Shown: in pieces, positions 1,291 through 30,215 of the stretch | How the letters are laid out: every line of letters begins with the position of its first letter | Position numbering within the stretch: the stretch's first letter is position 1 | DNA from: Selaginella moellendorffii | Lineage: Eukaryota > Plantae > Lycopodiophyta | Length of the DNA: 64,000 nt | Direction of reading: 5' to 3' | Assembly (NCBI RefSeq): GCF_000143415.4 | Contig: NW_003314274.1 | Location: forward strand, 270,794 to 334,793 | Notes under the pieces: model-generated | What the model saw: only the letters and a program-made list of their open reading frames with translations | What the model was told of the DNA's origin: nothing | The model's database searches: none | Translations under genes and position numbers: made by a program

Positions 1291-1298
1291 TCCACCAA

Positions 1299-1480
1299 TG
1301 TGACTGTATGAAATATAAAAATGGAATACAAAAATGTGCATATCAATTACCTCAAAAACCTTAACTTATATATAACAACAAGTGGTCCAGATTGAAATTA
1401 ATTTGATAGCTATTAAAATCCCACTATGCTAATATTAGTATACAGCATTATAGCTGTACATTTGAACCTCAAAATAAGAA
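1299..1480 (-). repeat. AT-rich LTR-like dispersed repeat (family G); further copies at ~2488-2990 and ~19047-19270
   Basis: Shared sequence ATGAAATAT..AAATGGAATAC..CAAGTGGxCCAGATTGAAA..AAAATCCCA..GCTGTACATTTG in three places; the first copy is adjacent to the tRNA-Ala-like PBS. Confidence 0.55.
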
Positions 1481-5478: not shown

Positions 5479-6663
5479 ATGTGCTCACTGCTTCCTCTCT
5501 GCTGCTCTAGAACAGAGTCCCCGGAGGCCGCCAGCGAACACGATGGTCACAACGAAGCTCTCATTGTTGGAGTGACCGGCATAGTTGGCAATAGCCTGGT
5601 CGAAGCTTTGCAGCGTCCCGACGCACCCGGAGCCCCCTGGAGAATCCGCGGCATCGCTCGCAGGCCCAAGCCCCGCTGGTTCGAGCACCCGGACGTCGAC
5701 TATATCCAGTGTAACCTGCTGAATCTGTCCGAAGTCACACCCAAGCTCTCCAGCCTCGGCGGAGTGACTCATGTATTCTGGGTTGCCTGGGAAAAGCAGA
5801 GCACCGAGGAGGAGAACTGCGAGGCCAATGGTTTCATGCTGCGATCTGTCCTCCAAGCGCTGCTACCAGTTGCCAAGAGACTCAAGCACGTCTGCCTCCA
5901 AACCGGTGTCAAGCACTACCTGGGACCGTATTTTCACTTTGGCACCATCAAGCACTATCGGCCTCCATTCCACGAGGACCTGCCCCGAGTCCCCGGCCTT
6001 CCAAACTTCTACTACACTCTGGAGGATATCTTGTTCGAGGCATGCTCGCCGTCGTCGGGCATAACGTGGTCCGTCCACCGGCCTAACATAATCTTCGGCT
6101 TTGCTCCTCGGAACCACGCCAACGTTCTTGGCAGCTTGGCCATATATGCTGCTATTTGCAAACACCAGAAGCTCAGCTTTAATTTTCCAGGAAACCGGCA
6201 GTCGTGGGAGACGCTTACGAACGTTTCGGATGCCGACCTTGTTGCGGAGCAGGAGCTGTGGGCTGCGACGAATCCAAGTGCCAAGAATGAAGCGTTTAAC
6301 ATTGCCGACGGAGACTGCACGAGCTGGGAGAGGCTCTGGGCTGTCATGGCTCGGGAGTTCAAGCTTGAGTGTCCGGCGTACGATGGAAAGCCGGTCAGTC
6401 TCGAACAGCTTCTGAAGAATAAGAAAAACGTGTGGGAGCAGATCGTTGTCGAGAACGGCCTTCTCGAGACGGCAGTACAGGACGAGACGTGGTGGGCTGT
6501 CGATTTGTGCCTCAACTTCCCGTTCCAGGTAGTCAGCTGCATGAACAAGAGCAAAGAACACGGTTTCCTCAGTTACAGGAACAGTGAAAAGTCCGTAATC
6601 TACTGGATACGAAAGATGAAAGAGAAGAATATCTTACCAGACGACAAATTTTGGACCAGCTGA
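5479..6663 (+). CDS. VEP1: PRISE family short-chain reductase (progesterone 5-beta-reductase / iridoid synthase-like, VEP1 homologue), 394 aa, no intron within the ORF
   Basis: Family motifs present: GVTGIVG, GIARR, QTGVKHYLGP, NFYYTLED (catalytic Tyr), WSVHRPNIIFG, SDADLVAEQELW, MNKSKEHGF. The exact start is less certain. Confidence 0.93.
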   Translation: MCSLLPLCCSRTESPEAASEHDGHNEALIVGVTGIVGNSLVEALQRPDAPGAPWRIRGIARRPKPRWFEHPDVDYIQCNLLNLSEVTPKLSSLGGVTHVFWVAWEKQSTEEENCEANGFMLRSVLQALLPVAKRLKHVCLQTGVKHYLGPYFHFGTIKHYRPPFHEDLPRVPGLPNFYYTLEDILFEACSPSSGITWSVHRPNIIFGFAPRNHANVLGSLAIYAAICKHQKLSFNFPGNRQSWETLTNVSDADLVAEQELWAATNPSAKNEAFNIADGDCTSWERLWAVMAREFKLECPAYDGKPVSLEQLLKNKKNVWEQIVVENGLLETAVQDETWWAVDLCLNFPFQVVSCMNKSKEHGFLSYRNSEKSVIYWIRKMKEKNILPDDKFWTS

Positions 6664-6828
6664 GTCGTTGCTCGTGCGGTCCGAATGCTCTGGCCCATCT
6701 AATAGCAATTACGTGCTTCCCTTCTCCACCCTTTCAAACTTTAAGAGAACAAAAAATCCGAAGAATCCAGCTGTCCTTCGCTATCTAACTTTCCAAATCC
6801 TGCTTATCTTACACCTGTAAGTGACGTA

Positions 6829-9438
6829 TCAGGACGGTCTGTCTAGAAAGACCGACTCCACCGATCGAAGCCCCTGATAACTGGCGTCAAACACGAGCTC
6901 CCCAGTTCCCACAGGCTTGGTCTGCTTCTTGAACTTGAGAAAAGCCAACGTGCTCGGATCGGTATCGATGGACTCCTCCACCCGTTTCTTATCCTTGAAA
7001 TCGTCGTGCTTGTCCAGGTACCCACGCTGCATTTGCTTCCGGATAACAGCAGGCTTCCCAGCTTGAACAGCACTAGAAGGTAAATCCCGGTTGGAAATTG
7101 TCCCGTTAATGTTTGGCGCCAACGCCAAAGGCGCCTCTGGTCTCTCATTTAAATCTATCCTCTCCGAAAACTTCTTCCTCGATTCGTTTAAACTCTGCAC
7201 GAAACGGTGCTGTAAATCAACACAAAAGTACATAGTAGAAAACGCTTACTTGTTTCTGCAAAGCTTTTCTCCTTTCTTTCGCTCTGTAAACAGCATTCTT
7301 GATCCCGTCCTTGTCCATCCAGCCCTCAGGCCATAGATCAGCCAGCTGGAAAAAAATTAAAAAAAAAAAAATTCAAGAATATAGTAGGGTGGAGAAATTT
7401 GGACACAACAAACCTCCATATAGAGCTTGCGACTTTGAGTACCTCTATTTTCATCAGTTCCCTGCAGAGGAATAACACTTAACACCTTCAAACGTTGCAA
7501 TAGCAAGTAAACCTCAAGGTACTGATCATAGAGTTCGCAGATCCGGTCTTCTGTAGCTTGGTCCCATTTGTAGTTCTTTTCACCAACTCCTTGAACGTCG
7601 TTGGAGAATCCTTCTTCAGCCTGACAGTTTTCCAACAATTAATGAACCCATTTAACATTATTATACCTTTGCCTGTATCGATTGTACCCTTGAGCGAACA
7701 ATTTCTGTCAAGTCACGCTTCATATGCGACAAACGATGTTCCTTTTCGTGCTTAGCGACTAAGCCCATTTCGACCATCTCCTTCAAATTTCTCTACAGAT
7801 GTAAAGAAAAACATCATTCTAGTGAACAACAGGATGGAGAAAAGTACCTTAAGTGTCTTCAACTGCATCAGATGACCAAGTATGCTCATCAAACGATCGA
7901 TAAGCTCGTCAGGAACTTTGCCTTGCCTCGCCTACAAAAGCACGACCGACTCAGAATCGGTTCGTAAATATCTTTACTGCATACCGCAAGTCTAGCAACT
8001 TTTGCTATTTTGGCCTTTATTTCCCTTGGCAAACGCCTTACTTTTCCGGTCGCATTTGGCTCTAGAACATCTGGAATCGGGCGCACTAGTACAAAGAGCC
8101 ACGTTAGAAATCATCACAAAATATATAACTTCCTTACGCTGAGCAACTCCAGCTTTTAGATCTTGAATGGCCCTTTCCAAAAGTGACACTTTCGCTGTCG
8201 AGCGTTTTTGGGGATCAACGCTCGAGTTTCCTAACGTTGAATTCTGCTAAACAAAAGTTAGAACAGCAATTTAGATCTTTCAGACTTACCGCTGACGAAG
8301 AAACTTTGCAGGCATCTGCACCCGAATATGGCTTCACAAACTTTGGCCGGCTCGGACTTCCAACAGCGCTCTTCTTTAGAGCTACCTCATTTCTCTCGCT
8401 TTCCTTGGTGCGGGAGCTGTTCTTCGTCAACCCTTTCAACGACACATTTTTTGATATGTAATTGGCTTCCCTGCAACTACTCCCGTCCCTTGAGAAAAAC
8501 TTGTTGTAGTCGAAGGAAAAAGCATCATTTCCAGCTGCCTGTCGAACCTGCGTTTCCGACTGCTTGTTTACTAGACATTCCCCGATTCCATCCGAAGAAG
8601 GCCTGTCTACGCTTTCTTGCTCTACCCTTCCAACAGCTTTTGATTTCTTTGAAGAATCCTGAGCATGCATTTCAGAACCACTGGTTTTCACCTCCTTGCG
8701 TTTCCTCTTCTTTGGAACAGGTAAACAAGGCGGATTGGGTTCTCTGAAATAACGATGATAAAACTTCAACGAAAACGCTATGAATCGAATTCAGGTCTTA
8801 CATATTTTCTAGCTTCCCTTTGTTGATAAAGAACCCGCTGTGCTTCGTTTTAGCATAGTCCACAGAGAAGTACTCGTCCTGCATGTTGAGATAAGAACAT
8901 AGAAATCTTTCGAGCAGCAAGTAGTCGTACCAGCTCCTTGTCATCTATGAATGAATCGTCTGTATTATACTGATCATCATCCGGGACGTTGTCAAGGTGA
9001 TTGTCGACAATTTCATCGTCACTTTCTTGTCCTTGTCCCTGTCAAGAGCAAGCTTTTAAGAGTCAAGCTACCAGATAGAAGAATCTATAACCTGATAAAG
9101 GCGTTCTATCTTCTCAATGACGTTACTAAAACGATTTGGACCTCCTCGTGGCTCTTTGCATAGCAGCACCGTCTGATCATCACAGGAGCAGAGAACTTCT
9201 TTATGGAAGGGAAAGAAAGAAAAAAAATCTCGCTTACCTCTGGTGCCAAGCGAGCTTCCAATGCTGGATTAGCACCGGGAGGAGCCTCAGCGGCAGGAGG
9301 GGGTGGAGCACTCTTGAGGAGCTTCTTCCACGACACCACATTCGAGGTAAGCTCCACATGAAACCTCTGCCTCCCGGATTCCGTCCCGGCAAAGGGCGAC
9401 GCCTGGAAAGCAGTCACGAATCCAGAGCCCTCGGGCAT
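6829..9438 (-). CDS. UBN: Ubinuclein (HIRA-complex H3.3 chaperone subunit), multi-exon
   Basis: Exon 1 RQRFHVELTSNVVSWKKLLK. HRD/HUN domain spliced across ~8800-8975 (DDQYNTDDSFIDDKEL|DEYFSVDYAKTKHSGFFINKGKLE). Middle domain LLERAIQDL..RRLPREIKAKIAKVARLA..YKWDQATEDRICELYD..RKLYME. Short GT-AG introns. Confidence 0.88.
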
Positions 9439-9985
9439 TTTCGATAGGGAAGCGAGAGATCAAAACGCCAGATTCTAGCCCGGCATTCCACTCCTGCTCT
9501 TCACCGATCCCTAAAATCTCTTGAGACCTTGCGACAAAAACCTGGATTATGCCGGTTAGCGGTGCCAGATCTTCCGCGAGCTAGGGTTCCTGAGATGGCG
9601 CACCTGAATTTCACCGAAGAAATGCCACTGGCAGCGCCTACTCAACCGCGCGAGACCAGGAATCAAACACGCGCCTCCATCCGGGAGAGCGCGACGAACA
9701 AACGTTACCTAATATGTAGCGTCCCACCTCTCTCTCCAGGCATACTTATAAAACCTTCAGAGACCAAGCACTCTCGAGAGCAGCCTGTTTAGGAATCGAG
9801 CTCTGGACCGTTTTGTGGAACGAATCTAGGCCGTTGATGTCTCTCCATCCAGGCCGTCCGTCTACTCTTCTTCTTTGGCGCCCAATGGGCTAGGGTTTAA
9901 GGCGCGACGACGCCAGAAGAGGTAAGAAAATGCGCAACGTTTTTATTGATTAACACCTTGCCGATTCCTAGCAGCGGTTCTCGCC
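9439..9985. promoter_or_regulatory. Bidirectional promoter region between UBN and TOP6B with an E2F site and a telo-box
   Basis: 547 bp between divergent ATGs. TTTGGCGC at 9874-9881 (E2F consensus TTTSSCGS) and TAGGGTTT at 9891-9898. Probable TOP6B 5'UTR intron at ~9922-9971. Confidence 0.6.
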
Positions 9986-12880
9986 ATGGATTCTAAAAAG
10001 GTTAAGGCGACGAAGACGCAGGATCCCGCTCTAAAGCAAAGTCTGTGAGATCCTTATGAATGCTGATGGATTTTGACTCCGTTTTTGTAGAGTCGCCAGC
10101 GGAATTTTTCTCCGAGAACAAGAACATCGCGGGTTTTGATAATGTATGTAGGCTTTGATTTCTATTTTGTTTTTTGATCCAGGGAAGTTTTGCAGCCTGG
10201 GAAAAGCTTGTACACGACAGTGCGTGAACTGGTCGAGAATGCTCTAGATTCGGCCGAATCCATTGCGGAGCTTCCAACGATCGAGGTCACAATGTGAGTT
10301 CTTCCTTTTCTTTCTCTTTATTTTCTCTCTTCTGGTCTCAAATTTTCCAGTGAAGAGATAAGCAAGTCCAAGTTTAACGCTATGATTGGACTGGTCGACC
10401 ATGAGCGAGTCGATGCGGAGCTTTATGATGACTACGAAAACGAGAAAGCCCGCGAGGTATATTTCTGCCAAGAAGGTCATTTTAAAATCGCTTTCATCCT
10501 GTAAACTTTCAGAAAAGATTGGCTAAAGAAGCTCGTGAGCAAGAACGCCAAGCGAAGGCCATTGCAGCTGGTAAAAAAGTCACTGTTCCTAAGGCTGGGA
10601 AAGGCCGTGGAGATACAGTTTTTTACAAAGTTTCTTGCAAGGTGAGGTTTTTCGTTTTCTGGAATTCTCACGATGATTGGAGTACCCACTCGCTTTCAGG
10701 ACAACGGCAAGGGAATGCCACACGATGATATACCAAACATGCTTGGTCGAGGTATTATTCTGTATATTGGAAGTCATTTTGATGGTTTCTTTACTGGTTT
10801 CTCAGTGCTATCTGGCACAAAATACGGGCTCAAACAAACTCGGGGCAAATTTGGACTCGGAGCAAAAATGGTATCCGCAACATCTTTTGTTAAACGATGT
10901 AAGCGAGAAGTCTCATGCAGGCACTGATATGGTCGAAAATGAGTACTGGCCTGCCCATCGAGATTTCGAGTGCTATGAAGGGGCAGAAATTCATTTCCTT
11001 TTGTCGTTTAGACATTGACATCCACAAGTAAGATGCTGGAGTTTAAAGAACGTTTAACGAGTTTTCTTTCCTTTGTGCAGGAACATTCCTAATGTTCATG
11101 TACTTGAAAAGAAGCCCAATACTACTGGCTGGCACGGGGCCGAAATTCATGTAACCATTGAAGGGAATTGGACGACTTATCGGGTGAGTTTCTTTTCTTT
11201 TTTTTTTTTTTTCTGATGTGCATTTGCAGTCCAAAGTTATAAGCTACATGCGGCAAATGGCTGTCATCACACCGTATGCACAGTTCCTATTTCGCTACAG
11301 AGCAGGGACTCCAGAGTATGTGTATTCTCGTTGTCCTAGTGCCTTGCTGATCGGTGGATACTCAGAAAGAATGTAAGCGTACAGTTTGTGAGGAGGACCG
11401 ATGTTATGCCTCCTGCACCTCCAGAGACCAAGTATCATCCATCTGCTGTGGATTTACTCTTGATCAAGCGACTTATTGCCGAAAAGTCGAAGCAAACGTT
11501 GATCCAGTATTTGCAGCAGGACTTTGTTTCAATCAACAAGTCTTATGCGGAACGTCTCATCGGTAAGCTTAATGCAACTGTTTCAGATCCTGAGCTCTGG
11601 TTTTCCAGGTGAAATGGGCCCTGATTTCACACCAAAAATGCTGGTAAAAGATCTTACCGACCAGCAGCTCGTTCGTATACATCAACTCTTTAGACAAGCT
11701 AAGTTCGACGATCCCGACGGTGATGTGAGTACAACTTTTCTATGTTAATATAGCTAACCGTGCATCTGTTTAGTGCTTAAGTCCCGCCGGAGAATACAAC
11801 CTGCGCCTTGGAATTACAAAAGAGCTGCACCCAGACATGGTCGCCACTTGCCAAGGGAAGTAAGATGATTTCCTGCCTGACTAGAACAGCGAAATGAGCT
11901 TTGGCTTTGACAGTGTTCAGGTCTTTGAAGGACATCCATTCATTGTTGAGGCAGCAGTGAGCTTAGGAGGGAAAAGCGTAAAGCCAGTACGTCCGCTGGT
12001 AATCTTTGTCTGGGCCTCACGTATCTAAATGAACAGGGCTTGAATATTTTCCGCTTTGCAAACCGTATCCCTCTTCTCTTTGAACAAGGTGGCGATGTAA
12101 TTACTAGAACAGCAACGAAACGAATCAGGTTAGCATTTTTCTTTTCCGTGATTTATAATCCCGTTCATTGTTTTGCAGCTGGAGCGCATACAAGATCAGC
12201 CACCTACAGGACAAGGTTGGAGTTTTTGTTAGCATTGTTAGCACAAAGATACCTTTCAAAGGAACTGGTAAAGAGTACATTGGAGATGATATTACTGAAA
12301 TAGCATCCGGAGTCAAGGTTGATCTGTTACTACGTTCGGCTGTGCTCTGACTCGGCTCTTCGTTTCAGTCTGCTATACAACAGTGCTGCATACAGTTGAA
12401 AGCAAAGCTCGTCCGTCAGAAAGCTGCTCGAGATAAACTTGAACGGAAGAAAAACCTTTCCAGGTATTATAAAGTTTCAATCTGCTTGGCTATTGAAAGA
12501 AAACTTGTAGGTACATCCCTGACGTCTCAAGAGCAATTTACGGGGTTCTCGCAAGCATTGCAAATGAACGGGAAGCGAAGAGGCAAAAATATGAACCTGA
12601 TAGCCGGGAGATTTTGCATAAAGTCGCGGATAAAGAAGTTACCGAGGTAACTTTGTCACGAAAGCTTACGCAGTATGTTGATCAGGTAAGTATAGGATTT
12701 TCTTTCTTTTCCGCTATTTTCATTATTTTACAGGTGGATGCCGAGTTGGCTCTTGATTATGCTACTCAAAGTGGACTTGTCAAGGCACGAGAGCCCATTT
12801 CCTTGGCAGGAGTAGACTGGACTCAAGCAAATTATCTCGAGCTTCACAGCCCAGTATGCGTCATGAAGTTGCTCTCCTGA
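9986..12880 (+). CDS. TOP6B: DNA topoisomerase VI subunit B (BIN3/HYP6/RHL3 homologue), many short introns
   Basis: Spliced exons give KSPAEFFSENKNIAGFDN, PGKSLYTTVRELVENALDSAE, DNGKGMPHDDIP, GTKYGLKQTRGKFGLGAKM (GHKL ATPase), RFANRIPLLFE and KIPFKGTGKEYI. ATG at 9986, TGA at 12878-12880. Confidence 0.95.
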
Positions 12881-13536
12881 CCATACATGGTGAGTTGTAC
12901 TCCGAGCTCTTCCGATGGCATTATTTCATCAAGAGGTATGCATGTCTTGTCTCATGTTTCAGAAATCAGGCAACTTTGACTAATGATCCGGACAAAGATA
13001 TTGGTGCTTGGTACTAAACTTGTTGATCGTAGTCATTGCAAGTGATCCGTCTCAAAAATTATAAAATTAAAACAAAAACATTCTTAAGAAAATCAAAACG
13101 TGTTTCTTTTTGCTACGACATTTCACGCCTTCATGTTACTATATATTCAGCTATAAGCTAAGCAACAAAAGTATCTAAATTGGGGCTTTTAGTTTGGTCA
13201 CTACACACTGCTTTTAAATCTTGCTTGTTCTCAACTCTAACATTATTGCAAGATCCTAGAAATGACAAGATCCCCTAAACTAAAGCTCATGGTTCTTTGA
13301 AGAGTGGGCTTTTAAGTGATTTACCTTTTAAAATTTGCAGTTAAACGTGGCTTCATTTTTAATGCTAATATTATAACATTTTATAGAAAAATCCTTGCAC
13401 TTTTTAGCCTGATTACAGACATTATTACAAAACAAAGATAATAAAATGCATACCAGTGGCTGACAGAAACATAATATTCAAACCTTAATCTAATGCTACT
13501 TACTTTTATTTTCTAAAAACTTTTATTAAATGTGAA

Positions 13537-13573
13537 TATATATATATATATATCTCTGTGTGTGTGTGTGTGT
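13537..13573. repeat. (AT)n(CT)n(GT)n compound microsatellite
   Basis: atatatatatatatatatctctgtgtgtgtgtgtgtgt seen directly. Confidence 0.85.
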
Positions 13574-13739
13574 ATTATTTTACCTCTTATTGTTGGTTCA
13601 ATCACTCCACAATATCTAGAAGGGAAAGCATAATTAGAGTATTTGGATTAAATTTTACTAATGTTATATGTCCAGCTTTCAAAGTCTTTGGCACATGCAC
13701 AAGAGTATTAAAGGCATTCTTATGGCTTACTACTACACA

Positions 13740-13990
13740 TTAGACTAAAAAGAAGAGGATGCCTAGGTATGTGAAGTCACAATGAACCCCAGTTGTAAAT
13801 ATCCAATTGATACCCAAAATGATATCACACACTTGGTTAGGCATCATATGTAATGAAAAGGTGTGCCTATACTCCCTAAGTTGTAACAATACATATACCA
13901 TATATCTAAAAGACTTTTGATCTTCAAACACCACACAAAGACATTTATGAAATCTTGTATAACTCAAGCAAACACACCATTGAATAACTA
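13740..13990 (-). pseudogene. Gypsy aspartic protease relic
   Basis: CDIILGINWIFTTGVHCDF matches the retroviral-type protease C-terminal DxILGxxWL motif. Confidence 0.5.
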
Positions 13991-15269
13991 AAGGATATTG
14001 TAACACTAAAACTAGGATATAACCAATCTTGAGAAAAGAAACATAAATCTCTCAATCTTCCAAAATAACATATGCATAGAGAAAGATAGCATGGCCAGAA
14101 GTACATGAGGGTTTGTGCATTGAGGCAGTAGGGCTTGTGTATTTTTAACCAATGAGGAAAAAAATATTATTTGGCATTTTTATGATGATTGACATAATTC
14201 ATCACACTATATCACTAATCTTAACAATCAAAATATGATTGGCAGCACCTCTAAGCACTATTACACCTGCCATAATCACTATCAGGCCTCTATACATGAT
14301 CATGCTAGCCATGATCATTATCGCACCTCCATGCATAATTATGTATGCCATGGCATGCTAACTACTCCTCTTCAACCTATTGCACCACAATTCACAAGAC
14401 AATCAAAAATTTCTATGGAGAGACAAAATATTATTCACCATAAAATAACCCAAGGTCATTTTGGATTATTAAGAACCTATATTTATACAAATTTGACAGA
14501 TTATGCTGACTTGCTGTCTAATATGGGTTGGCTGTTGCCTCTCTTGTCATAAAGTTACTATAAGTGAGGTATGCAAAATCAATTAAGAATCAATGAGTAG
14601 AAGTAGTTACTTGTAAGGAAGCTTTCCAAGCTCGTAGTGCCAGGGGCTGTTCGACACTAGAATTTCCTCCCCGGGCTCAAGATTTAGCTCAGAGTCTTGC
14701 TGAAGCACATATAAATTTATTTAAATTATTAAAGCTCATATTTCTAATAAATACTTCCTCTCTAGATTTTTGTAAAGTACTATCAAATTAATCACATCTC
14801 AATCTTAATGATAACATTAGCTAATTTAAAAAGGCATTTAACTAAAGCATTTAAGAGTTGTTATTAAGTATTCTTCATTTAAGAATGATTTAAAAATTAC
14901 TCATCTTAAAAAATATATTCCTAACTCTCTATATTTGGATATCTAAAAGCATCCAAACTTATTTTGTGTATAGGTTAAGTTTAGTAAGTTGGATGGGTAT
15001 ATTCTAATTCTTTCATTTAATTTTAATGCCCATTGAAAGCTCAAGCTATTTCTTCTCACACAATCATGTCTTGATAATTTATATTGCATTCACAAGATTT
15101 ACATACCCTCTCTTTTGTGAATTTATGTAATTCTTTTCTTTGTTTCCCTCCTTTCTTTTAATTATTAGTTGTTCACATTACTTTCTTTCATGAAAATTCA
15201 TATTGATTATTCTAGCAATTTCTTTCTTTTGGTGTTTTTTTTGTAAGAAAAAGTACTTATTTTCTGTAC

Positions 15270-17060
15270 TTCTCCCAAGGGTTGTAAGGGGTTTCAAAAG
15301 TATAAGAATAAGAACCCAATGTTAAAGGAACTCTCTAGCCAAGTTAAGATTGGGATTACCTTGGGTGAGAATGAACATGCATTTAGGGGGTGTTAGAAAG
15401 GCTTATTAAGGAAGTGTTTAAGAGCAATTTTTACACTCGGAAAGAAAACTAATTATGGTGCTTTTAACTCATGTGGAGTGGTGCTTTACTTAAGTATTAT
15501 ATAACTTATTGGTCCTTGCTCCTTCCTAAGGGTTTTGGCCTTCCCTTTGGGATGAGAGTGGGAATAGGGGTAATTATTCCCTTATACCGTTACACCATGG
15601 TGTTTCCCCTCGGGGTTTTGAAGTAAGAAATGCATACAAGATTTGGGATTTAAAGGGTTCTATGATCAAATCTTGTTATATTAAGAGATGTTAGGAATTT
15701 GGAGGCTTAATGTGCTTGGTTGCTTATGCCTATGGGAAATGGAATTAAACTTTACATTCAATTTAACCAGGGGAGGGGGATTGAGAGAGAATTTGGGAAT
15801 TCATGAAACTTTATTGCTCATGCAGTGAGTACTTGAACCAAGTAAGTTTAAGTAAGAGTTAGTACAATAGGTGTGAACCCTGGAAAGAGAATTTAATAGA
15901 GGCCAACACAAAGGTGGTTAAATAGATGAGATAAATTAGCAAATTGAAAAAAGAAAATTTGTGATTTATAATTTGGTATTTGAGTTTTTTTCTCAGTTTT
16001 AGCAAAAAAATAAAGGTGGATTGTTGAGAAATGGCTAAGGCAAGATGTAAGAATCAAGACAAAGATAAAACCTCCTCTAGAGATGGAACTTTTGGTCAAA
16101 CAAAAAGCTGTGGATAAGGAATCCTTGCATAGTGAGGAAACTTCCAAATAGGAGTTTAGTGGCGAGGTTCAGTCATCCAAGGCTTGATTGAACACTTTAG
16201 AAGGACAAGTGGCATAGACCAATACTTTGTTAGAGACTTTCGTATGTAAGCTAAAGTATAACAAAAAGTGGAAAAAAAAACAAAAGACTATAGATGCTAG
16301 TAGCGCAGAAGGAGTGGACCCTATAGTAGAGACTAAAGTAAGACTAAACAAGGTCGAACAAATTGAAATAGAGTCATTCCCCCAAGCAGTTCCCAAATAT
16401 AAACCAAAGCACTAACCGATCTTTAAGGGAGTGAATGACTATAAAGTGGTGGAAAATTAGTTTTATGATATGAAGGATTACTTTCGAGCATTACAATTAT
16501 CAAACTCTAAAAAGGTTTTATATGCACAACTATACTTAGCAGATAATATTAAGTTTTGGTGGAGAACAACAAAGGCCAATAAAGGACTGGTGGCTACTTG
16601 GAAAGTGATGAAGGTGAGGATTTGTGCAACATGTGTTCCTCGGAATGTTACTCTACATCTAAAGGATGAATTGAGTAGGTTAAAATAGACAAAAATCATT
16701 CAAGAGTGTGTGAATGCATTTTGGCCAAGTAAATCCTTATCACAAATATGGGTGATATAAATGTGTCCTATGCCTCCATGTTAGGCTTGCAAACTTGGGC
16801 TTAAGGCAAAGTGATGCACTAAAACCCGACTAATACAAAGAAGCATTGGATGCAGTGATCAAAATGCATTTTAATGATAACCTGTGAAAAGGGAACATGA
16901 CAGGGTTTGGGTCCATATTTAGTAAGGGAGTTAAACCAAGAGGGACATATGGAAAAGGAAAATTTAGGAAAAGTTTATTTAAGAATGAATCCTCAGGGTT
17001 TCTGAAAGGTAGATCTGGTAGCCAAAGGGCAAGTACGTAAGGTATCATACTTGAGCAAAC
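15270..17060 (+). mobile_element. Truncated family E chromovirus: partial 5' LTR (ends ~15970), decayed Met PBS, degenerate gag
   Basis: LTR end matches the ends at 25382 and 34418. PBS tggtatttgag at ~15974. Gag fragments YKPK..FKGVNDYKVVE, MKDYFRALQL..YLADNIKFWW. Confidence 0.8.
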
Positions 17061-17998
17061 ATGGTTCTAGGGTGATATGGGACTTATATGGTATGCCTCA
17101 TGTCATATGAGGATCATGTCCTCCAACAATTAAGAGTTGGACAACACACCTTTAGTCTAGATCTAGAGGCAAATACTCAAAGATCTCCTTGACAACTACA
17201 GGGTGGATAGCATAGGCTATCAAATTGCTATCAAAATGAACAGAATAGTAAATGTTGTGAAATATGAGATCTACCTCCCAACTATGAATCTAACAAGATT
17301 CACATATCTACCACCATGCTCCTCCATAAGTGAGAAGCATTGTATAGGTATAGAAACCATATTCTTATAGTGGAAATAGAAAGGCAAGGATACCTTGTAG
17401 CCACCTTCATCACTATCTCTTATGCACAATAGCCCAAGTGGACCAAGTGGAAGATGTGTTCCATGAGTTATATAACTGTGGCCTTCAATCAATTCTAGGT
17501 ATAGATATCTCTATTAAAAACAAAGGGTTACAATTGGCCATCTATTTAAGAAAAATAGGTGAATAGCAACACCTGATCATCAAAAGGCCCAAAAAATAGC
17601 CTATCATGGTGAGCAAAGCCATAGTGGTCCTCTTAGTGTGAGGAGAGAGAGAAAGGAGGTTCACTATGGAGTTACAAAACTATCCTTTAATGTTCTTATA
17701 ATTTATTAAGTAAAAAGATCTAGAATATATTAAATAAGAAATATCATTTTCAGTATATGCCACCAGTCTTAAGCCTGTTTATATATAATATTGGGTTGAC
17801 TAGATTTAATACAATTGATTGAAAGGTTTCTATGCTATATTATTAATATTAATGTACTTACTACAAGTATACTCATATTATTTAATGTAAACATGATTTA
17901 TTATTCAGACTAATATACTACAGGATAAAATTTATTTTTATATGTACATGATTAAATTAAAATTCAATATATATTTATATATGATACTCAAAGAAATA

Positions 17999-18764
17999 TT
18001 ATGTACACCAATGTAAGAATCCATTCTTATTTTCAATATAATTCTCTATGTAAAAAATTGAATAGCGGTAATTTGTAAATCCTCCTCCAGTAATACAATG
18101 AGCTTGGATAATAACACCTAATTGATATATACCAATCGTAGTTTCATCACAGCTCACAAGTCCATTAATGCCTTTCTTTAAATGCCCATTAAATTGCCCA
18201 ATATAAAAATTAAGATTAAGTCTAGAAGTAATAATTCTATTATTTTCATTTGTACATGATGCTTGCAAAAAGAAGCTCGATACAATAGAAATGGAAGTAC
18301 ATGAAAGATGGAAACTATACAACATAAGAAAATTACAAACAAAAATAAGATACAAAATTAAAATTAAAATACCTGCCACATATATGAGGAGGATTAGCAC
18401 CAGCCCAATTAGCTGAGAAATCATTTATCTCAAAATTATATGCACCATCATGAAATATATACCACTTTTGATCTTTCATATTTAATAAATTAAATTTAAA
18501 AACTGGAAAACGTATTAATCTTCTATCCCATTGCCCATCACACCAATACTCTGTTGTAGGAGTTGGAAAAATATATTTTTGAAAATTATGTCCATCTGTA
18601 AAAATTTCATCATAGATTATATTATTTCCTGATTTACAAATTAAATGAATATCTTCCCCCATGTAGCTTGTAATAGATATCAATACTCTTGGAAATCCAT
18701 TCACAATATAATTTGATAAGAAAATTATAAAGAAAAAAATAAGTAAGAAAAATTTATTAGACAT
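17999..18764 (-). CDS. Secreted SPH (plant self-incompatibility S1-like) domain fused to a cyanovirin-N homologue (CVNH) lectin; exons 18764-18373 and 18314-17999, 235 aa
   Basis: Signal peptide MSNKFFLLIFFFIIFLSNYIVNG. SPH motifs IHLICKSG, TTEYWCDGQW, FPVF, WYIFHDGAY. A 58-nt GT..AG intron (18372-18315) joins in frame to CGSFHLSC..LQASC..SRLNLNFYIGQFNGHL..VSC..IQAHC..IENYIENKNGFLHWCT*, the CVNH two-repeat pattern. Confidence 0.8.
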
Positions 18765-20084
18765 GAATTAATATAAATATATAAAGATAAAAAAGAGTGT
18801 ATAATAAAATATAACCTTAAATTTTCTAAAATTAATTTTGAATTAGAAAATTAATTTAATGGTCTTTATTTATCTATATAGTTCCAAACTAAATATTAAA
18901 AAAACATTTCGATGAATAATGAACTTAATAACCTAGATTGTATACATCCATATAGTTCTAATTTTAGCTTTTAAAAATATATTTTAAAATATATATTCTA
19001 TATTCTAATTTATAATTAATTAAACAAATAATATTATTTTAATTACTGTCATGAGTGCATGGAATATGGAAATGAAATTAAAAATATGTATATTTAATTT
19101 GCCCCAAAACTTTAGCTTATATACAGGAGCAAGTGGTTTGAATTGAAATACATCTAATAATTAGTAAAATCTTACAATATTATTATTAATATATAACATT
19201 ATAATACACTTAAACATTAAATCATCCCCTCCTCTAAGAAGGATAGAAGGCAATTAGTGTTCTTTAGTTGATAGGTCAAAATTTGCAGGAACATCAAGAG
19301 GAAGCACTAGTGGACCTATAAGTGGTGCAAATTATTTTTTATCTGTTTGTATGAAATGCTTCAGTCATTGCATAACAATTTTTAGAAGATCAGTCTATTC
19401 AAAATTATGTTGAACCTCATAAACTTGTAGTCCAACTTGCTGCATGTAATGCATATGTTTTTACCAGTGTGACCAAGGAAGGTTATACCCACGTGTTAGG
19501 TGATGATATATCCATTGAGGAATTCAAGGTTAAAGTGAATATGAACAGATAAGTGGGATAATTTGGTGACGTGTTTAAGAGCCAATTCTAGCTCCTCTAG
19601 GAGATTGAATGGTCAATGCTCCCAATCCAAGTGTGGGTGGCACTATCTACTTGGATACCTATAGTGGCTCGTTGGAACCTCACTCTAGCCACATGGCTAG
19701 GGCACCTAAAGGCGGAAGGTCGGGAGAGTACCCACAAGGCTTATATAGGGCCATAGTGTTTTAAAATGTTGTCCCAAAGTCCTGCACTAAGGAAAAGAAG
19801 AGGAGTAGTCCTTTTGTGTGGTAACCAAGGATGTAGTCATATGGCAAGGAAGTCCTAGAGGCTAGTGGGGCATAATGGTTGGGCCTATTAGCCTTGACTT
19901 AGTGGTAGTGTTGGCGAACATGGCGATGGACGGAAAGGGAGTTAGTGTGGGCTGAAAAAGGGATATTGGGGAAGGTTGTTCTCTATATGTATAGATATCC
20001 TAAGGAATGATCACTCATGGACGGATGGCCTAATCTTGGAGAGATGGGATTGTGATATAAGTGGTGTTGGATCACTAGTGTGAT

Positions 20085-22686
20085 TATCGCGAATGTAACT
20101 TCGGGTATCGAAAGTTATCTATCGGATAGTCCTTATGGACACTTTCCTTATTGCCACGACGGCAGGAGGTCGGTATTACTAGACCCTTTATTAGTCCCTT
20201 TATTAGTCCCTCTTGTGCTAGTGGAGTTAATTGGTATTTTGAGTGTACTTAGACCGGATGAGCATAAGGACAGAATTTCTATATGCTATTAGTTAAACAT
20301 ACTTAGCTTAGTAAGGAGTTCCCATCTCATTTTATCTTGCACTTGTTAGTGACAAGAACCCTCGCGTATTGAGATTAGTCCTTCAATATCACTATATGAT
20401 AGCTTACCATGTTTGCTAAACACCCTCGCTATCATGCCCTTTGTATTAGTCTCATTTTGGTCTTAAATGCTATTTATGGAAAGTGTTTAGATTTGCTCAT
20501 TTGGCATATCTACAGAATGTAGAGATTGGCCTGAACACAATGGTGTTCATCCTATGTCCAAATTCGCATTCTAGCCCTATTCCATAATTAGTAAATTTCA
20601 AGCTTGTCCCAAAGACTAACTCCTAATACTAAGGGAGGCTTGGGGTGAAAGCCCAAAGTGTGTGTTCCTCAAGGGGGGGGGGGGGTTCTAAATGTATAAT
20701 AGGGATAGTGGGTAGGTTGGGCATGGCCGACCAACTTGAGGCATAGTCTAGCTCTCACTTGCGTGTCTATCTTTGTTCTGCATCCGGCTTGGGTCTAAGC
20801 CCAAGCTCCACCCCATGCTAGCTGGTGGAGTACCTATATCTTTGTGTTAGGCCACCGGTATGCTAAAATAGCACCAAACTCTGTTTCGCTCCGTTTTGTA
20901 TGCTAGTCTGTAGCACACATGGTTTTTACCCTTTATCCTATGGTGATTTACCATAGGATAACACCACGAAGCGCTCTTTGTGCCACGTGACAGATGCCAC
21001 ATGTCACATGCCACATGTCCAAAGGATAGTGGTGTGGAACCTGAGGTTAAGGGCCTTGGGCCACTGAACGAAAGAACGGTGCCAAACTCCCAAGCATGGA
21101 GCCAAGGAGTGAGGGAACCGAACCATGGAGCAACTCCCGAGCATACAGCCCAAGGAGCGAAGGGACAAAATTCCGGAGCGACTTGGAACAGTTCTGGAGC
21201 AAACACCATCCTAATGCCAGGACCAACACGCAAAATGGAGCCAAATGGAGTTTGGCGCTATTTTGGTATATCGGTGGCCTAACGTGAGGACATGGGTACT
21301 CCACTAGCTAGCATGGAATGGAACTTGGGCTTAGACCCAAGCCGGACGCAGAACAAGGATAGGCACACAAGTGGGAGCTAGACTATGCCTTAGGTTGGTC
21401 AGCCATGCCCAACCTACCCACTATCCCTACTATACATTTAGAACCCATGGAGCAACTCCCGAGCATACAGCCCAAGGAGCGAAGGGACAAAATTCCGGAG
21501 CGACTTGGAACAGTTCTGGAGCAAACACCATCCTAATGCCAGGACCAACACGCAAAATGGAGCCAAATGGAGTTTGGCGCTATTTTGGTATATTGGTGGC
21601 CTAACGTGAGGACATGGGTACTCCACTAGCTAGCATGGAATGGAACTTGGGCTTAGACCCAAGCCAGACGCAGAACAAGGACAGGCACACAAGTGGGAGC
21701 TAGACTATGCCTCAGGTTGGTCAGCCATGCCCAACCTACCCACTATCCCTACTATACATTTAGAACCCCCCCCCCCCCCCCCCTTGAGGACATGCTTTGG
21801 GCTTTCACCCCAAGCCTCCCTTAGTATTAGGAGTTAGTCTTTGGGACAAGCTTGAAATTTACTAATTATGGAATAGCGCTAGAATGTGAATTTGGACACA
21901 GGATGAACACCATTATGTTCAGGCCAATCTCTACATTCTATAAATATGCCAAATGAGCAAATCTAAACACTTTCCATAAATAGCATTTAGGACCGAAATG
22001 AGACTAACACAAAGGGCATGATAGCCAGGGTGTTTGGCAGACATGGTAAGCTATCATGTAGCGATATTGAGGGACCAATCTCAATATGCGAGGGTTCTTG
22101 TCAAGCCAGTGCAAGACAGAGCAAAAAAGAACTTAAAAGCCAGGCCAAGTATGCCTGGCTCAATAGACACTTAAGAATTCCTTCCTTATGCTCATCCGGC
22201 CAAGTACAGATGCAAAGTCTAGTTTACTAACACTTGAACAAGAGGGACTAATAAAGGGTCCAGCAATACTAACCTCCTGCCATCGTGGTAGTAAGGTAAG
22301 AGTGTCCGTAAGGACTAGTCGACAGGTAACTTTCGATACCCGAAGTCACATGCGCGACATAGTCCTGACATTGGGATGCTAGTTGCTCTAGGAATGTTCC
22401 AAGTCACTCCATGCTCTTGTCCCTTTGTTCCTTGGGCTGTATGCTTGGGAGTTGCTCCGTGGTCCAGTTTCGTCACTCCTTGGCTCCATGCTTGGGAGTT
22501 TGGCACCATTCCTTCATTCAGTGGCCAAGGCCCTGAACCTTGGGTTCCACACCACTGTTGTATGGACATATGGCATGTGATATGTGGCATATAACATGTG
22601 GCACATGGAGGGTTTAGGTTCTACTTTGTGGTGTTATCCTATGGTAAATCACCATAGGATAAAGGGTAAAAACCACATGCGCTACA
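20085..22686 (+). mobile_element. Family C LTR (T[G>A]TCGCG...GCTACA) interrupted by a second C LTR
   Basis: 20085-20908 plus 22365-22686 is the reverse complement of the inserted copy. Confidence 0.75.
20909..22359 (-). mobile_element. Solo LTR of family C in inverted orientation, with a ~322-bp internal tandem duplication (~21120-21441 / 21442-21763)
   Basis: TG...CA ends; perfect 5-bp TSD TAGTC at 20904-20908 and 22360-22364. Confidence 0.85.
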
Positions 22687-24339: not shown

Positions 24340-27300
24340 TATAAGGAACCAACTCCTCAAGGTGTTGAAGACTAAAGTATCCCTAAAACCACAACCAGAA
24401 TGATAAAGAGTTCATTGGATGAGGCCGAGTCCAAAATCGAGTCCAAGACCGACTCTAAGACTTGGTTTGAGACCGAGTTCGAGATCGAGTCCAAAACCGA
24501 GTTCAAAATCGAGTCTGAGATCCAAAATTGGGTTTGAGACCAAGTCCAAGATCGAGTCTGAAACTGAGTTCGAAGTCGGGTCTGACGAGATCAAGTCTAA
24601 AATCAAGTCCAAGACTGAGTCCGAATACTAATATATATCATGGGGTGAAATCCCAAAGCAATTATCTCCCACGGGGGGGGCCGTAGGGGGCTCTAAAAGT
24701 ACAATAAGGATAGTGAGGTTTAGGAACTAGTCTTGAAGGAACTATCCAGTGAACTAACTTGAGGTTGGGACTAGGGGTTAAGGGCTTTGGATAGGAGTGA
24801 GCATGGACTTAGGTGGTGCCAGAGAGGCCACCCAAAGAAGTAATCAAGAGTAACTCCCAGTCCCAGAAGGGAAACCGACTGCGGTGCTCTTAACTCATGT
24901 GGAGTGGTGTGCCACTTAAGTACCATGTGGCTTATTAGTCATCACTCCTTCCTAGGTGCTTGGGCCTTCCCTTTGGGATGGAAGTGGGGGAGTGGGGGAA
25001 TTAGGCCACAGTGTTTCCCCCTGGGTCTTGAAGTAAAACATGCACCTAAAGCTTGGGAGTTAGAGGGTCTCATGTTTAAGTCTTGTTGTACTATGGGATA
25101 TTAAGATCTAGAGGCTTCGTGTGCTTAGTTATTTATGCTTACAGAGAGTGTAACCAAAACTTAAGTCTAATCTAACATAAAGAGGGGGATAAAATGAGAA
25201 TTTGGGAATTCATGGATGGATGGCTAACACTCCGTTACTCATGTAGTTAATAGCTGAAACCAAGTAGGAGATAGTACAATAGGTGGGAACCTTGGCAAGG
25301 GAATTTAATTAAGGCCAAAGTAATGGTGGTTAGATAAATGAGGTAAGCTAGTAAATTGGAAAGGAAAAATTTATGGGTTACAATTTGATACTAGAGTCTT
25401 TCCCTCAATTTTAGTGAAGGATAGAGGTGGATTGTTAAAAGATGACTAAGGCAGGGCATAAAAGAACCAAGGTGGAGATGAAACCCCCTTTGAAACTGGA
25501 GCCTTTAGTCAAACAAAAAGCTATAGATGAAGAATCCTTATATAATAAGGACTTCAGTGAGGAAACTCTTAAACATGAGTTTGATGAGGAGGTTCTATCG
25601 TCCAAGGCTTGATTGAATGTTCTAGAAGAACAATTCCCACAGACCAATGCCTTGCTAAAGACCCTTATATGCCAGCTAAAGTGTGACAAAAAACAAAAGA
25701 AAAAGCAAAAGACTATAAATGCTAGCAGTATAAAAGGCATAGACCCTTTGGTGAGGATTGAGGTAGAACGAAACAAGGTAAAACAAACCAAAGTAATATC
25801 AATCTCTCAAACAATTCCTAAGTACAAACCAAAGCCCCCATCAATCTTTAAAGGAGTGAATGACTATAAAGTGGTGGAGGATTTATTTTATGATATAATC
25901 CGAGTATTATGGTTACCAAGCTCAGAAAAGGTTTTATGTGCAAAACCATATTTAGCAGATAACGATAAGTCTTGATGGAGAACAACAAAGGCTAATGAAG
26001 GATTTGTGGCCACTTAAGAAGTCATGAAGGTGAGGATATATGCAATTTATGTTCTTCCGAATGCTAATTTGCACCTAAGGAATGAGTTGAGTGAGCTAAA
26101 GTAGACAAGAACCATTCAAAAATATATCAATGGGTTTATGGCCAAAAGGATCCTTATCACAAATATAAACCACATGGATGTGTGTCATATCTTCATATTA
26201 GGCTTATAGACTTGGGCTCGGGGCAAGGTGATGCCAACCAACTAAAAGGAAGGATTGGATATAGCTATTAAGATGTATTTCAATGATAACTTGTGAAAGG
26301 GGAACACAACGAAGTTAGGGTCTATGTTTAGCAAAGGAGCCAACCAAGGGGGACATATGGAAAAGGGAAATTCTAGAAAAGTTTTTCTAAGAATGAATCC
26401 TTAGGGTTTTAGAAAGGTAGATCCAGTGGCCAGTGAGCAAGTAAGTGGGGGAGTCAGATGAAGTCTAAACTAAGGTACATGATCTAGTCCCTAGCACAAA
26501 GTTACTCATGTAATGAGTAACTTTGGTAAAGAGTCATCTGCGACACAAATCTTTAAGCCTAAAAGTGGAGTAGAAAGGGTGCCACATGGTAGTGGTCGAA
26601 GTAGATGTCCAACAAACATAACATGTTTGGACCAAAGGCTCTTACTTGGAAAGTTGAAAGTGGGAGTGGAACTCCAAACAAAGTGCTCAAAGGATGAGAA
26701 TGAAGCAATCAATGAATGAGCCTCTAAAAAGGGATACAAGAAAGACTGACATATGGAAGTGTCAAGAATGAGTCTAGAAAAGAGTCTAAGAAGAGGTCCA
26801 AGATGGAGTCCAAGAAAAAGTTCAAGATGGAGTCCGATATGGACCCAAAATAGAGTCTAAGATGGAGTCTAAGATGGAGTCCGATATGGACCTGAGATGG
26901 ACCCAATATGGACCCGAGATGGAGTCCAATATGGAGTCCGATATGGACCCAAGATGGACCCGATATGGACCCGATATGGACCTGAGATGGAGTCTGATAT
27001 GGATCCGAGATAGAGTTCGAGATGGACATGATGTGGAGTCTTAAGTCGAGCCCAAGATGGACTTGAGATGGAGTCCAAGATGGACTCGAAACCGAGACTG
27101 AGATTGAGTCTGAGATCGAGATTGAGTTTGTGACTGAGACCAAGTTCAAGTCCAAGTCCAAGGGTGAAAGCCCAAAGTGATTATCTCCCAGACCTTAGGG
27201 TTTGGTGAGCTCCAAAAGTATAATAGAGGGATGACTCTAGTGAAGCTAGTTTGGCCAGGAAAGGCCAATGTGACCAAGGAAGGTTATACCCATATGTTAG

Positions 27301-30215
27301 ATGATGATATAATCATTGAAAAATCCAAGGCTAGAGTGAATATGGACAAACAAGTGGGATCACTTGATGAAGTGTTCAAAAGTCAACTCTAGCTCCCCCA
27401 AGAGATCGAATGGTTGATATTCCCAATCCAAGTGTGGGTGGCATTACCTACATGGATACTTGGCATGGCTCATTGGAACTTTGTTTTAGCCATATAAGTA
27501 AGGCACCTAAGGGTAAAAGGTGGGGAAAGTACCTACGAGGTTTGCGTAGGGCCACAAATGTCATCCCAAAATCCGAGACTATGGAAAGGAAGAAGATAGT
27601 GTAGTGACCAAGGATATGGTCACATAGTAAGGAAGTCCTAAAGGTTAGTTGGATTTAGTGGTCAGGCCTTTAGGCCTTGATCCAGTGGCAGTGTTGGCAA
27701 GTACGACTGTGAATGGAGAGAGACTTGGTTGGAATATAAAAAGGGATATTGGGGAAGGGTGTTCCTTATGTCTTTGGGCATCCTAAGGGTGCTAAGGTGT
27801 GGTCAAGGGATGACCACTCATTGATAAATAGCCCAATCTTTGAGAAACGAGATTGTGATGCAAGTGGTCTTGGACTACTGATGTGGCAAGGGTGAATAGA
27901 TATGGCCTTAGTGTAATGGGTTGATATATCAACAGCATCTTTGGGTATTGATTATTGAATCAAACACATGGAGCATGAGGACTAAGTGCAAAGGCTAAGT
28001 GGTATAGATGCCATTCATGAGGTTAACATGTCCCTAAATCTTAAATAGGATTTACAGAGGTTGTAAGTGAAACTCTTCCAAATGGTCAAGGGTGTGGTTA
28101 AGTGACTAAGGTAGAATGGAAAAATTAGTCGCTTACAAATCATTTGTGATATCTACTAACCCTCCAAGGGAAACTCAAAGATAGTTTTGTTAAGATCTTT
28201 ATTGACATGGATGCTTTAGATAATTTTGTAGCTATAAGCATAGTTCGACAAGCTTAACTAATGGAGCAGTGGCTGAGAGAACTAAGGACTCTAGATTTTT
28301 TTCAAGGTAGCCAAACCACTAATGAGGTACATTAACAAGTAAAAGTCAAAGTACAAACATAGAAAGTGGATATGAATTTCACCATTTTGGACATAATAAG
28401 ATTTAACATGATCTTTGGAGATGAGTTCAATAGGTTTGTGGTGGGCTTGCACAAACAAGGTAGGAACCTAGTGGTATTGGCGCATGTTTGAGGAAAATGA
28501 TTTAGGGTGCAAGCTCTGAATCTAAGTGAATACCTAAGGAAAACAATCTAGGGTGAAGGCTTAAGATCTAAAGGTAGGGCAATATAAAGCCAAAGACTTC
28601 TACTTAAACCTAGTGTTTATAAAAAGACTACTCATTAAAGGAACCAAAGCAGCATTTTTAAGCTTACTTCCAATAGGGAGTGACAAAAACACAAGAACAT
28701 AGGAAGTACTTTTGGTAATCTATTGGGTGTTAAACCAATTTCGAGATACTATGCTAGAGGAGTTACCAGTGGGGTTACCCTCTGCATAACTAATAGAATA
28801 TAAGATCGAGCTAGTCAAGAGTGTTAAAATGGTGATTCATCCCCCTATCAATTGAACAAAAAAGAACTTGAAAAGCTCAAGCACCAACTTGAGAAATTAA
28901 TGAATAAAGGGTATGTTAGGTTGAGAAAGTTGCCATATGGGGCACTAGTATTATTTATGAAAAAGAAAGATGGCTATATACACATATGTATAGACTACCA
29001 GTTGCTCAACTAGTATATAAATAAGAACAAATACACTTTACCAAGGATTGAGGACTTGTTTGATAATTTGGAAAATGCAAAATACTTTTTAAGGATTGAC
29101 CTAAGTTCAAAATATTATTAGATCAGGGTAGCAAAAGATGATGTCAAAAGAACAACTTGTGGAACAAGATATGGAAGCTTTGAGTTTCTAGTGATGGCCT
29201 TTGAGTTGTGCAATGCACCGGCAATGTTCTTGGCATTAATAAACCACATTTTTGTACCCTATCTAGATCACTTTGTAATCATCTATATTGATAACATCCT
29301 AATCTATAACAAGACGCTAAAGCAGTATGCTAAACACTTGGCGAAGGTGTTTGAGAAACTAAGGAACGCAAGTTGTATGCTAAAAAGAGTAAATGTGACT
29401 TTGCTTAACAAGAGATAAAGTTTCTCCAGCATATGGTGGCAAAGACAGGCTCAAAGTGGACCCTAAAAAGGTCTAAGCAATCCAGCAATGGGAACGATCA
29501 TTAAATATACATGAGTTAAGGTGTTTTTGGGGATATGCAACTACTACCGAAAGTTTATCAAACACTATTCAAAAGTAACCCTACTTTTAACGAACGAAAC
29601 AGAGAAAAACGAAGATGGTATAAATAGTGGAATGCAAAATGGCATTTGTCCATCTCAAAGGGAAATTGAGGAAGACTCCTGTGTTGGCATTATTTGATAG
29701 TAAGGACTTTGAAGTAGAAATGGATGCTTCAGAATTTGCATTGAGCATAGTTTTAAAGTAAAATAACCACCCAATGGCATTCTTCTCAAAAAAGTTTGAT
29801 AAGACTCAGCGAAAGTGGCATGTCTATAAAAAGGAATTGTTTGTAGTGGTCAAAGCACTCAAGGAATGACAACACTACATTGGGAGACACTGGTATATAT
29901 GGATAATATGGCAACAAAACACTTATCACAACCTGACCTATGAGGAAAACAAAGTTAGTGACCAATGCTTTAGCCAAGTTTGATTGTGAGATTCTGTATC
30001 CTAGGAAGAGCATTATTATAATAAATGTGCTAAGTCAAAAAGCAAATTTAAAGTTGGTGATATCCAGTGAGACAACCACCTTTTGGGACAATGTGCAGAT
30101 AACGTATGAGGACGATGGTCTAGCATAAGAAGTGTGGCTAAGGAACCAAGACGTGGCTCATTAAAGAGGCAAGCCGCGTATAGAAGAAAAAATAAGTTAT
30201 GTGGAACGTAATGAA
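24340..30215 (+). mobile_element. Family E Ty3/gypsy chromovirus, 3'-truncated: 5' LTR 24340-25382, decayed PBS, gag, protease, RT, RNase H (pseudogenised)
   Basis: LTR matches the solo LTR at 33299-34418. Gag YKPKPPSIFKG. RT fragment MAFELCNAPAMF..FVIIYIDNILIY. RNase H region encodes VEMDASEFAL. Confidence 0.88.
26537..28137 (+). mobile_element. Solo LTR of family D inserted between gag and protease of the E element; contains a GAGTCCGAGATG-type array (~26765-27160)
   Basis: TSD AGTCA/AATCA. Removal restores ..GGTAAAGAGTCA|TTTGTGATATC.., matching the copy at 31620-31660 (rc). Confidence 0.82.

Follow-up and report, generated by a model that had tools for sequence, protein, structure and literature searches.

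The S-protein homologues (SPH) are small, secreted, disulfide-bonded proteins of plants, and a function is known for the PrsS protein of poppy alone (PMC6439154; bioRxiv 10.64898/2026.02.10.705222). In poppy, the SPH ligand triggers an ion influx and cell death in pollen. The structure of SPH15 from Arabidopsis (PDB 6g7g) is a beta-sandwich of eight or nine strands, and the topology of the SPH fold has been likened to that of membrane-binding domains. The second family of relevance here, the CVNH lectins, is known among the seedless plants from bryophytes, lycophytes, and ferns (PMC6362431). A survey published in 2019 listed 27 'cyanovirin' proteins for Selaginella moellendorffii, 25 of them with a single domain and two with a double domain (PMC6362431, Suppl. 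Table 3), and in this work plant CVNH proteins were of single or double domain only, a chimeric architecture being listed for none of the plants (PMC6362431). The table of this survey leaves room for hidden fusions, because an N-terminal module as weak as the one described below falls under the InterPro thresholds. Our literature searches found no paper in which cyanovirin or CVNH is paired with SPH as a fusion, and none that names both S-protein homologues and Selaginella. An earlier note on the DNA described here, made from the sequence alone, stated that no SPH-CVNH fusion had been described, and this statement agrees with the lack of any such paper, with the single and double CVNH architectures of the 2019 survey and with protein searches, in which no fused relative was found. 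The predicted protein, with its putative splice, is in this respect a new domain combination, in which two kinds of secreted plant protein, each known already, are brought together.

The locus is located in a window of 64,000 nucleotides, by which we mean the whole stretch of S. moellendorffii DNA that was analysed, and it forms part of the scaffold GL377578.1 (assembly GCA_000143415.2), which is 2.86 Mb in size. It is nuclear spikemoss DNA and not contamination, because it lies within a plant scaffold of this size with ordinary plant genes on either side. Two overlapping open reading frames are present on the minus strand, one of 143 aa (ORF 1, 18764-18333) and the other of 141 aa (ORF 2, 18424-17999). 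When these are joined across a putative intron, the following features are obtained:

Window 17999-18764, minus strand: two-exon gene, SPH-like + CVNH (S. moellendorffii scaffold GL377578.1, record ~288,792-289,557)
18696-18764, minus strand: signal-peptide-like N-terminus, residues 1-23, read from the sequence
18423-18695, minus strand: divergent SPH-like domain, residues 24-114, Pfam PF05938 below cut-off
18373-18422, minus strand: linker, residues 115-130 plus the bases AG of the split Ser codon, with exon 1 ending at 18373
18372-18315, minus strand: putative intron, 58 nt, GT-AG, phase 2, GTATTT...TTGTATAG, GC 0.155
17999-18314, minus strand: exon 2, complete two-repeat CVNH domain, Pfam PF08881, stop TAA 18001-17999

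As intron candidates we considered every in-frame GT..AG pair at a distance of 30-400 nt, and both domains stay whole with one of these only, viz. that bounding the 58-nt intron. The next-best candidate, an intron of 61 nt that would yield a protein of 234 aa, was rejected, as the first CVNH cysteine is lost with it. Removal of the putative 58-nt intron leads to the junction ...CAT ATA TGT GGC AG/GTATTT...TTGTATAG/T TTC CAT CTT TCA TGT, at which the frames of the two ORFs are therefore joined via a split AG/T Ser codon (..HICG-S-FHLSC..). The joined reading frame consists of 130 + 1 + 104 = 235 codons; it starts at the ATG at 18764-18762, where an in-frame TAA is found two codons upstream, and it ends at the TAA at 18001-17999. 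The putative splice sites comprise a canonical CAG/GT donor and a pyrimidine-rich TAG acceptor, and the segment between them, which bears a short (AAAATT)n-type repeat, is much lower in GC (0.155) than the two exons (0.27 and 0.30). Introns of plants are typically richer in AT than exons. The two overlapping ORFs, the GT-AG intron that joins them in frame to 235 aa, and the extra cysteine at either end of the lectin domain, all of which had been pointed out in the earlier note, were thus recovered in the sequence, the splice itself being putative. We regard the two-exon in-frame model as the most economical reading of this sequence.

According to a different reading, which we consider rather improbable, there is no fusion and the locus gives rise to two separate products: an mRNA retaining the intron would encode the SPH-like protein of 143 aa, ending in a 13-residue tail, and the 141-aa ORF (18424-17999) would produce the CVNH domain from its own ATG, behind a hydrophobic leader of 37 residues. 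Plants commonly retain introns, and an SPH-like product translated through the intron would contain four cysteines, which is an even number. Additionally, upstream of the acceptor the frame of exon 2 continues for 37 codons without a stop (18424-18314), up to an ATG immediately behind a TAA. The chance of such an arrangement is ~0.05 at this composition, and the leader thus encoded is almost wholly hydrophobic. However, this leader is encoded partly by the T-rich intron, which bears the (AAAATT)n repeat, and partly by exon 1 read in another frame, and in such sequence composition alone is expected to produce hydrophobic codons; nor does the leader resemble a typical signal peptide, given its 37 residues and the lack of a charged n-region. 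The splice model also accounts for the fact that position 1 of the PF08881 profile corresponds to the first residue after the putative acceptor, i.e., the CVNH profile starts exactly there, and canonical CAG/GT and TAG sites bracket just that segment whose GC content lies under that of both exons. Lastly, transcription of CVNH alone would require that exon 1 contain a promoter. The hydrophobic CVNH leader is probably a by-product of the T-rich intron, yet it would permit a CVNH-only product.

Under the preferred two-exon model, the identity of exon 2 as a CVNH domain is solid based upon sequence comparisons of several kinds. The Pfam profile PF08881 matched it in two stretches with a score of 45.4 bits (cut-off 24.5, E 1.5e-11), and the closest solved structure was that of CrCVNH from Ceratopteris richardii (2jzj, E 1e-7), followed by CV-N. 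The alignment with CV-N spans residues 4-102 of exon 2, and both of its halves align to the repeats of CV-N and CrCVNH; a direct alignment of one half with the other gave a z value of 0.6, which is not significant alone. Similarly, 27 of the 30 nearest neighbours of exon 2 in the ESM language model were CVNH clusters. A single-sequence AlphaFold model of this exon had a pLDDT of 40 and was unusable.

Exon 2 has cysteines at its residues 5, 20, 55, and 72, which are the family positions. The first pair matches the cysteines of CV-N (which are paired C8-C22 and C58-C73) column for column, and in the second pair the spacing is 17 in comparison to 14-15 in CV-N, so that HMMER shifts this pair by a few columns. 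Two further cysteines flank the domain. One of them, Cys129 (18380-18378), is contained in the linker, which falls beyond the end of the Pfam SPH match at residue 114, and the other, Cys234 (18007-18005), is located directly before the stop codon. The total number of cysteines is eight, which is even: the SPH positions account for two, the CVNH positions for four, and the flanks of the CVNH domain for the remaining two. Two motifs of CV-N with the form ..I-x-N-x-D-G-x-L-K.., which we take to carry the Glu/Asn/Asp residues that contact the sugar, correspond in exon 2 to ..I-G-Q-F-N-G-H-L-K.. and ..I-E-N-K-N-G-F-L-H.., where Asn takes the place of Asp and the positions remain polar. That the exon-2 domain binds sugar is plausible on this basis.

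The relationship of exon 1 to the SPH family is more distant. The Pfam profile PF05938 (Self-incomp_S1) matched residues 37-114, corresponding to profile positions 12-94 of 104, with a score of 20.4 bits and an E value of 7.9e-4, which is under the cut-off of 24. A phmmer search of exon 1 against 1.84 billion representatives gave two matches with E values no higher than 1e-3, and the sole credible one was a protein of Kingdonia uniflora with three SPH repeats (3xSPH; E 3.7e-4), whose own Pfam score is 229 bits. The second match, an ankyrin-repeat protein of 2103 aa (P0001), was rejected as compositional. When exon 1 was compared with the three K. uniflora repeats individually, BLASTP gave E values of 3e-07, 6e-07, and 2e-04 at 23-33% identity, and the identity was 28-31% in a MAFFT alignment in which the hallmark motifs of the family (..V.L.xTN.., ..HCKS.., ..T..WC...W.., and ..W....DG.Y..) were aligned. 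A comparison by hhalign of a profile of the three repeats with exon 1 gave a probability of 80.7% (E 1.3e-5, 86 columns), and all 30 of the nearest ESM language-model neighbours of this exon were clusters of S-protein homologues. In the alignment with the three SPH repeats, C43 and C75 are at the first two conserved SPH cysteine positions, and no second SPH cysteine pair is present in exon 1, where the corresponding loop is shortened and contains no cysteine.

Structural comparisons of exon 1 were less specific. An AlphaFold model based upon four sequences was all-beta with seven strands at a mediocre pLDDT of 60, and at this pLDDT its TM score against a model of an SPH cluster was 0.53, amid other generic sandwiches. 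A fold search of the PDB with the same model (pLDDT 60) retrieved C2-like sandwiches at Z ~7, with SPH15 outside the top 50, and sequence searches of the PDB with exon 1 alone and with the four-sequence SPH profile gave no usable match, SPH15 (6g7g) being obtained at E 0.78. A word-index protein search with one SPH repeat also retrieved nothing. These results, weak but concordant, suggest that exon 1 codes for a divergent SPH relative. We refer to it as SPH-like, and do not assign it as a member of the family, because in the two tests applied its score lies under the Pfam threshold and a second cysteine pair is lacking.

The N-terminus shows, by inspection, a basic n-region, a hydrophobic core of 12 residues, and a c-region of small residues ending in ..VNG; the mean Kyte-Doolittle value for residues 5-16 is 3.47. 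The domain assignments of the earlier note can now be judged in the light of these comparisons. Its CVNH domain is established by the Pfam E value, by the CrCVNH and CV-N structure matches, and by the language-model neighbours, and when the two profiles it had named were applied by HMMER, CVNH scored above its cut-off and Self-incomp_S1 below it. Its SPH domain survives in a reduced form, in that four weak tests (Pfam, phmmer, hhalign, and ESM) are in agreement, but the score is under the Pfam cut-off and the second cysteine pair is missing. Similarly, the signal peptide is retained as a signal-peptide-like segment only, based upon the observed n-h-c pattern.

Similarity searches were carried out using exon pieces or natural ORFs, one at a time. 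Exon 1 was the subject of a full HMMER search, and exon 2 was compared by means of the word-index, PDB, Pfam, and ESM. Word-index searches with the natural ORFs against predicted proteins of 78-247 aa gave no match, and neither these searches nor the phmmer search with exon 1 revealed a predicted protein that is identical or similar. Apart from one distant SPH match, neither exon has a detectable relative in the protein collections searched. No related locus was found in a collection of genome contigs consisting of bacteria and archaea only. The gene appears to be unannotated, with no call for it in the NCBI annotation collection, where the neighbouring record was covered up to window position 16,663, 1.3 kb short of the gene.

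In its composition, the gene is very different from its neighbours. The GC content of the coding sequence is 0.28 with a GC3 of 0.18, compared to 0.55 and 0.68, respectively, for the PRISE gene at 5479-6663, and the much higher AT content that had been claimed for it is therefore real. The claim that the frame contains no stops was also upheld: 234 codons are open, for which the probability is ~1.3e-9 at the gene's own composition (27-28% GC), where the stop probability is ~8% per codon, and the other five frames of each exon contain 4-17 stops apiece. One may nevertheless ask whether these are chance open frames in AT-rich DNA with no gene at all. In a Markov simulation of 3.5 kb with the regional composition, a stop-free run of at least 130 codons was observed in 57 of 2000 trials, and it is therefore the domain matches, and not the open frame alone, that carry the argument. 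A chance frame would not be expected to match the CVNH profile with the Pfam E value noted above, over both repeats and with all four cysteines, while the only credible match in the entire library for the frame adjoining it is an SPH protein. The absence of a gene is hence scarcely conceivable, and it is effectively refuted already by the Pfam CVNH and PDB matches.

GC1 and GC2 in the gene (0.31-0.36) are higher than GC3 (0.17-0.20), as expected of a constrained coding frame under AT-biased mutation, and the persistence of an open frame with two recognisable domains under AT pressure argues for long constraint, at least along the lineage. However, the open frame could instead reflect a recent copy of an AT-rich parent, without selection on the present copy. 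The ratio of observed to expected CpG amounts to 0.30 for the gene and 0.16-0.28 for its flanks, compared to 0.90 for the neighbouring genes, and the gene itself contains an excess of TpG. Depletion of CpG with an excess of TpG is the signature of prolonged deamination of methylated cytosines, and a CpG-depleted make-up of this kind is that of methylated, usually silent DNA, which counts against the reading as a gene. The locus could thus be an intact-looking copy that is silent or decaying, i.e., a young duplicate of an AT-rich member of an SPH-like/CVNH family that came to lie in TE-like, methylated DNA and has lost its expression. Its open frame would then reflect youth or constraint at the level of the family rather than function at this locus. 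The lack of a call in the NCBI annotation collection, and of any recorded predicted protein that is identical or similar, also fits such a copy. Against this, the 234 codons have remained free of stops at the per-codon probability given above, both domains are of full length with all of the CVNH cysteines present, and a GC3 far under GC1 and GC2 indicates that AT pressure has been long and that the protein has been kept. We consider the silent copy unlikely, while giving it serious weight.

Other features noted in the window include the following:

5479-6663, plus strand: PRISE-family gene (progesterone 5-beta-reductase / iridoid synthase-like), intronless, 394 aa, annotated in GCA_000143415.2
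20087-22357: hairpin-like element composed of nested inverted repeats, longest arms 336 nt at 92% complementarity
21123-21744: tandem duplication of 300 nt, within the hairpin-like element 20087-22357
20933-20961 and 22634-22662: palindrome with perfect arms of 29 nt, TTATCCTATGGT..ACCATAGGATAA
58563-59168, minus strand: RVT_1 reverse-transcriptase ORF, 201 aa, E 5e-27, retroelement remnant or copy

Blocks of AT-rich DNA are observed at 13000-19600, 1-4000, and 28000-32000, with a GC content of 0.17-0.39 and an observed/expected CpG ratio of 0.16-0.30. The neighbouring PRISE, HUN, and topoisomerase VIB genes (5479-12880), with their ratio of 0.90, are expressed-looking. The genome appears to be split here between a CpG-depleted, presumably methylated compartment and a normal genic compartment, and the borders, at ~13.2 kb and ~19.6 kb, are sharp. 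The surroundings of the gene had been described earlier as debris of transposable elements (TE), and for the immediate flanks this was not borne out: in the ORFs there, no TE or other domain scored at or above the Pfam cut-off, the two sub-threshold matches were at chance level and not to TE families, and the flanks consist of CpG-depleted, AT-rich DNA. Elsewhere, open frames encoding periodic peptides (of LDL/GLG type and of SISDS/HIGL type) are present on both strands at 24412-24631 and 26724-27161, and the DNA underlying them is probably minisatellite-like rather than genic.

On balance, we lean towards the reading that the locus is a real, unannotated two-exon gene for a chimeric lectin of the secretory pathway of ~235 residues, a 'chimerolectin' of defence or signalling. 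As predicted, this protein would begin with a signal peptide, followed by a divergent beta-sandwich module of SPH-like type and, after a short linker, by the complete CVNH domain with its two repeats. Following splicing of the intron, it would be exported to the apoplast, where the CVNH domain may attach to a cell surface that displays mannose-rich glycans, most likely that of a fungus or an oomycete, and by being so bound it would concentrate the SPH-like module on the surface of the target. The four canonical CVNH cysteines would be paired as in CV-N, and an extra disulfide between Cys129 and Cys234 perhaps staples the ends of the lectin domain, in which case C43 and C75 would remain to form the SPH-like pair. 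The most economical role for such a protein would be apoplastic defence against fungi or oomycetes, and a role in cell-cell recognition is possible. The functions that the earlier note had proposed, i.e., recognition of gametes or spores or defence against microbes, are speculative.

A more specific proposal, which is speculative and which we hold to be quite doubtful, is that of a lectin-targeted SPH protein, in which the CVNH domain would dock on mannose-rich glycans, either of a microbe or of the plant's own gametophyte or spore surface, and the SPH-type beta-sandwich would perturb the membrane or signal there. If this were true, the large SPH family would gain its first functional handle beyond self-incompatibility in poppy, and the use of the SPH module in the construction of secreted effectors would be shown to be older than the seed plants. 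A natural SPH-CVNH fusion would also suggest that the targets of SPH-type proteins are glycan-bearing cell surfaces, and it would give a directly testable protein. Additionally, the gene would exemplify intact secreted-protein genes that reside in an AT-rich, CpG-depleted compartment of Selaginella and are missed by annotation pipelines, and the lectin and defence repertoire of this species would therefore be under-counted.

The chimeric lectin that we favour can be compared with three kinds of described proteins. The proteins of the fungal structures 2l9y and 5c8o are presumably from Magnaporthe, with LysM inserted within the CVNH domain, whereas the partner in the predicted spikemoss protein is SPH-like, N-terminal, encoded by a separate exon, and found in a plant. 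Based upon the PDB titles, the fungal CVNH-LysM lectin (2l9y) and the MoCVNH3 variant (5c8o) share with it the use of CVNH as a module of a chimeric secreted lectin. In comparison to the SPH/PrsS proteins (PF05938; PrsS of Papaver rhoeas; SPH15), the spikemoss module would likewise be a small, secreted, all-beta module with the hallmark motifs at ~30% identity, its secretion being predicted; it differs from them in that it is under the Pfam cut-off, is devoid of the second cysteine pair and its loop, is fused to a lectin, and occurs in a lycophyte, and to SPH15 itself it has no detectable sequence match. Lastly, with the CVNH lectins of seedless plants (CrCVNH, 2jzj) it shares a two-repeat domain of ~100 residues with two cysteine pairs, and what distinguishes it from these lectins is the predicted SPH-like module at its N-terminus, the two extra cysteines that flank the lectin domain, and an extreme AT codon usage.
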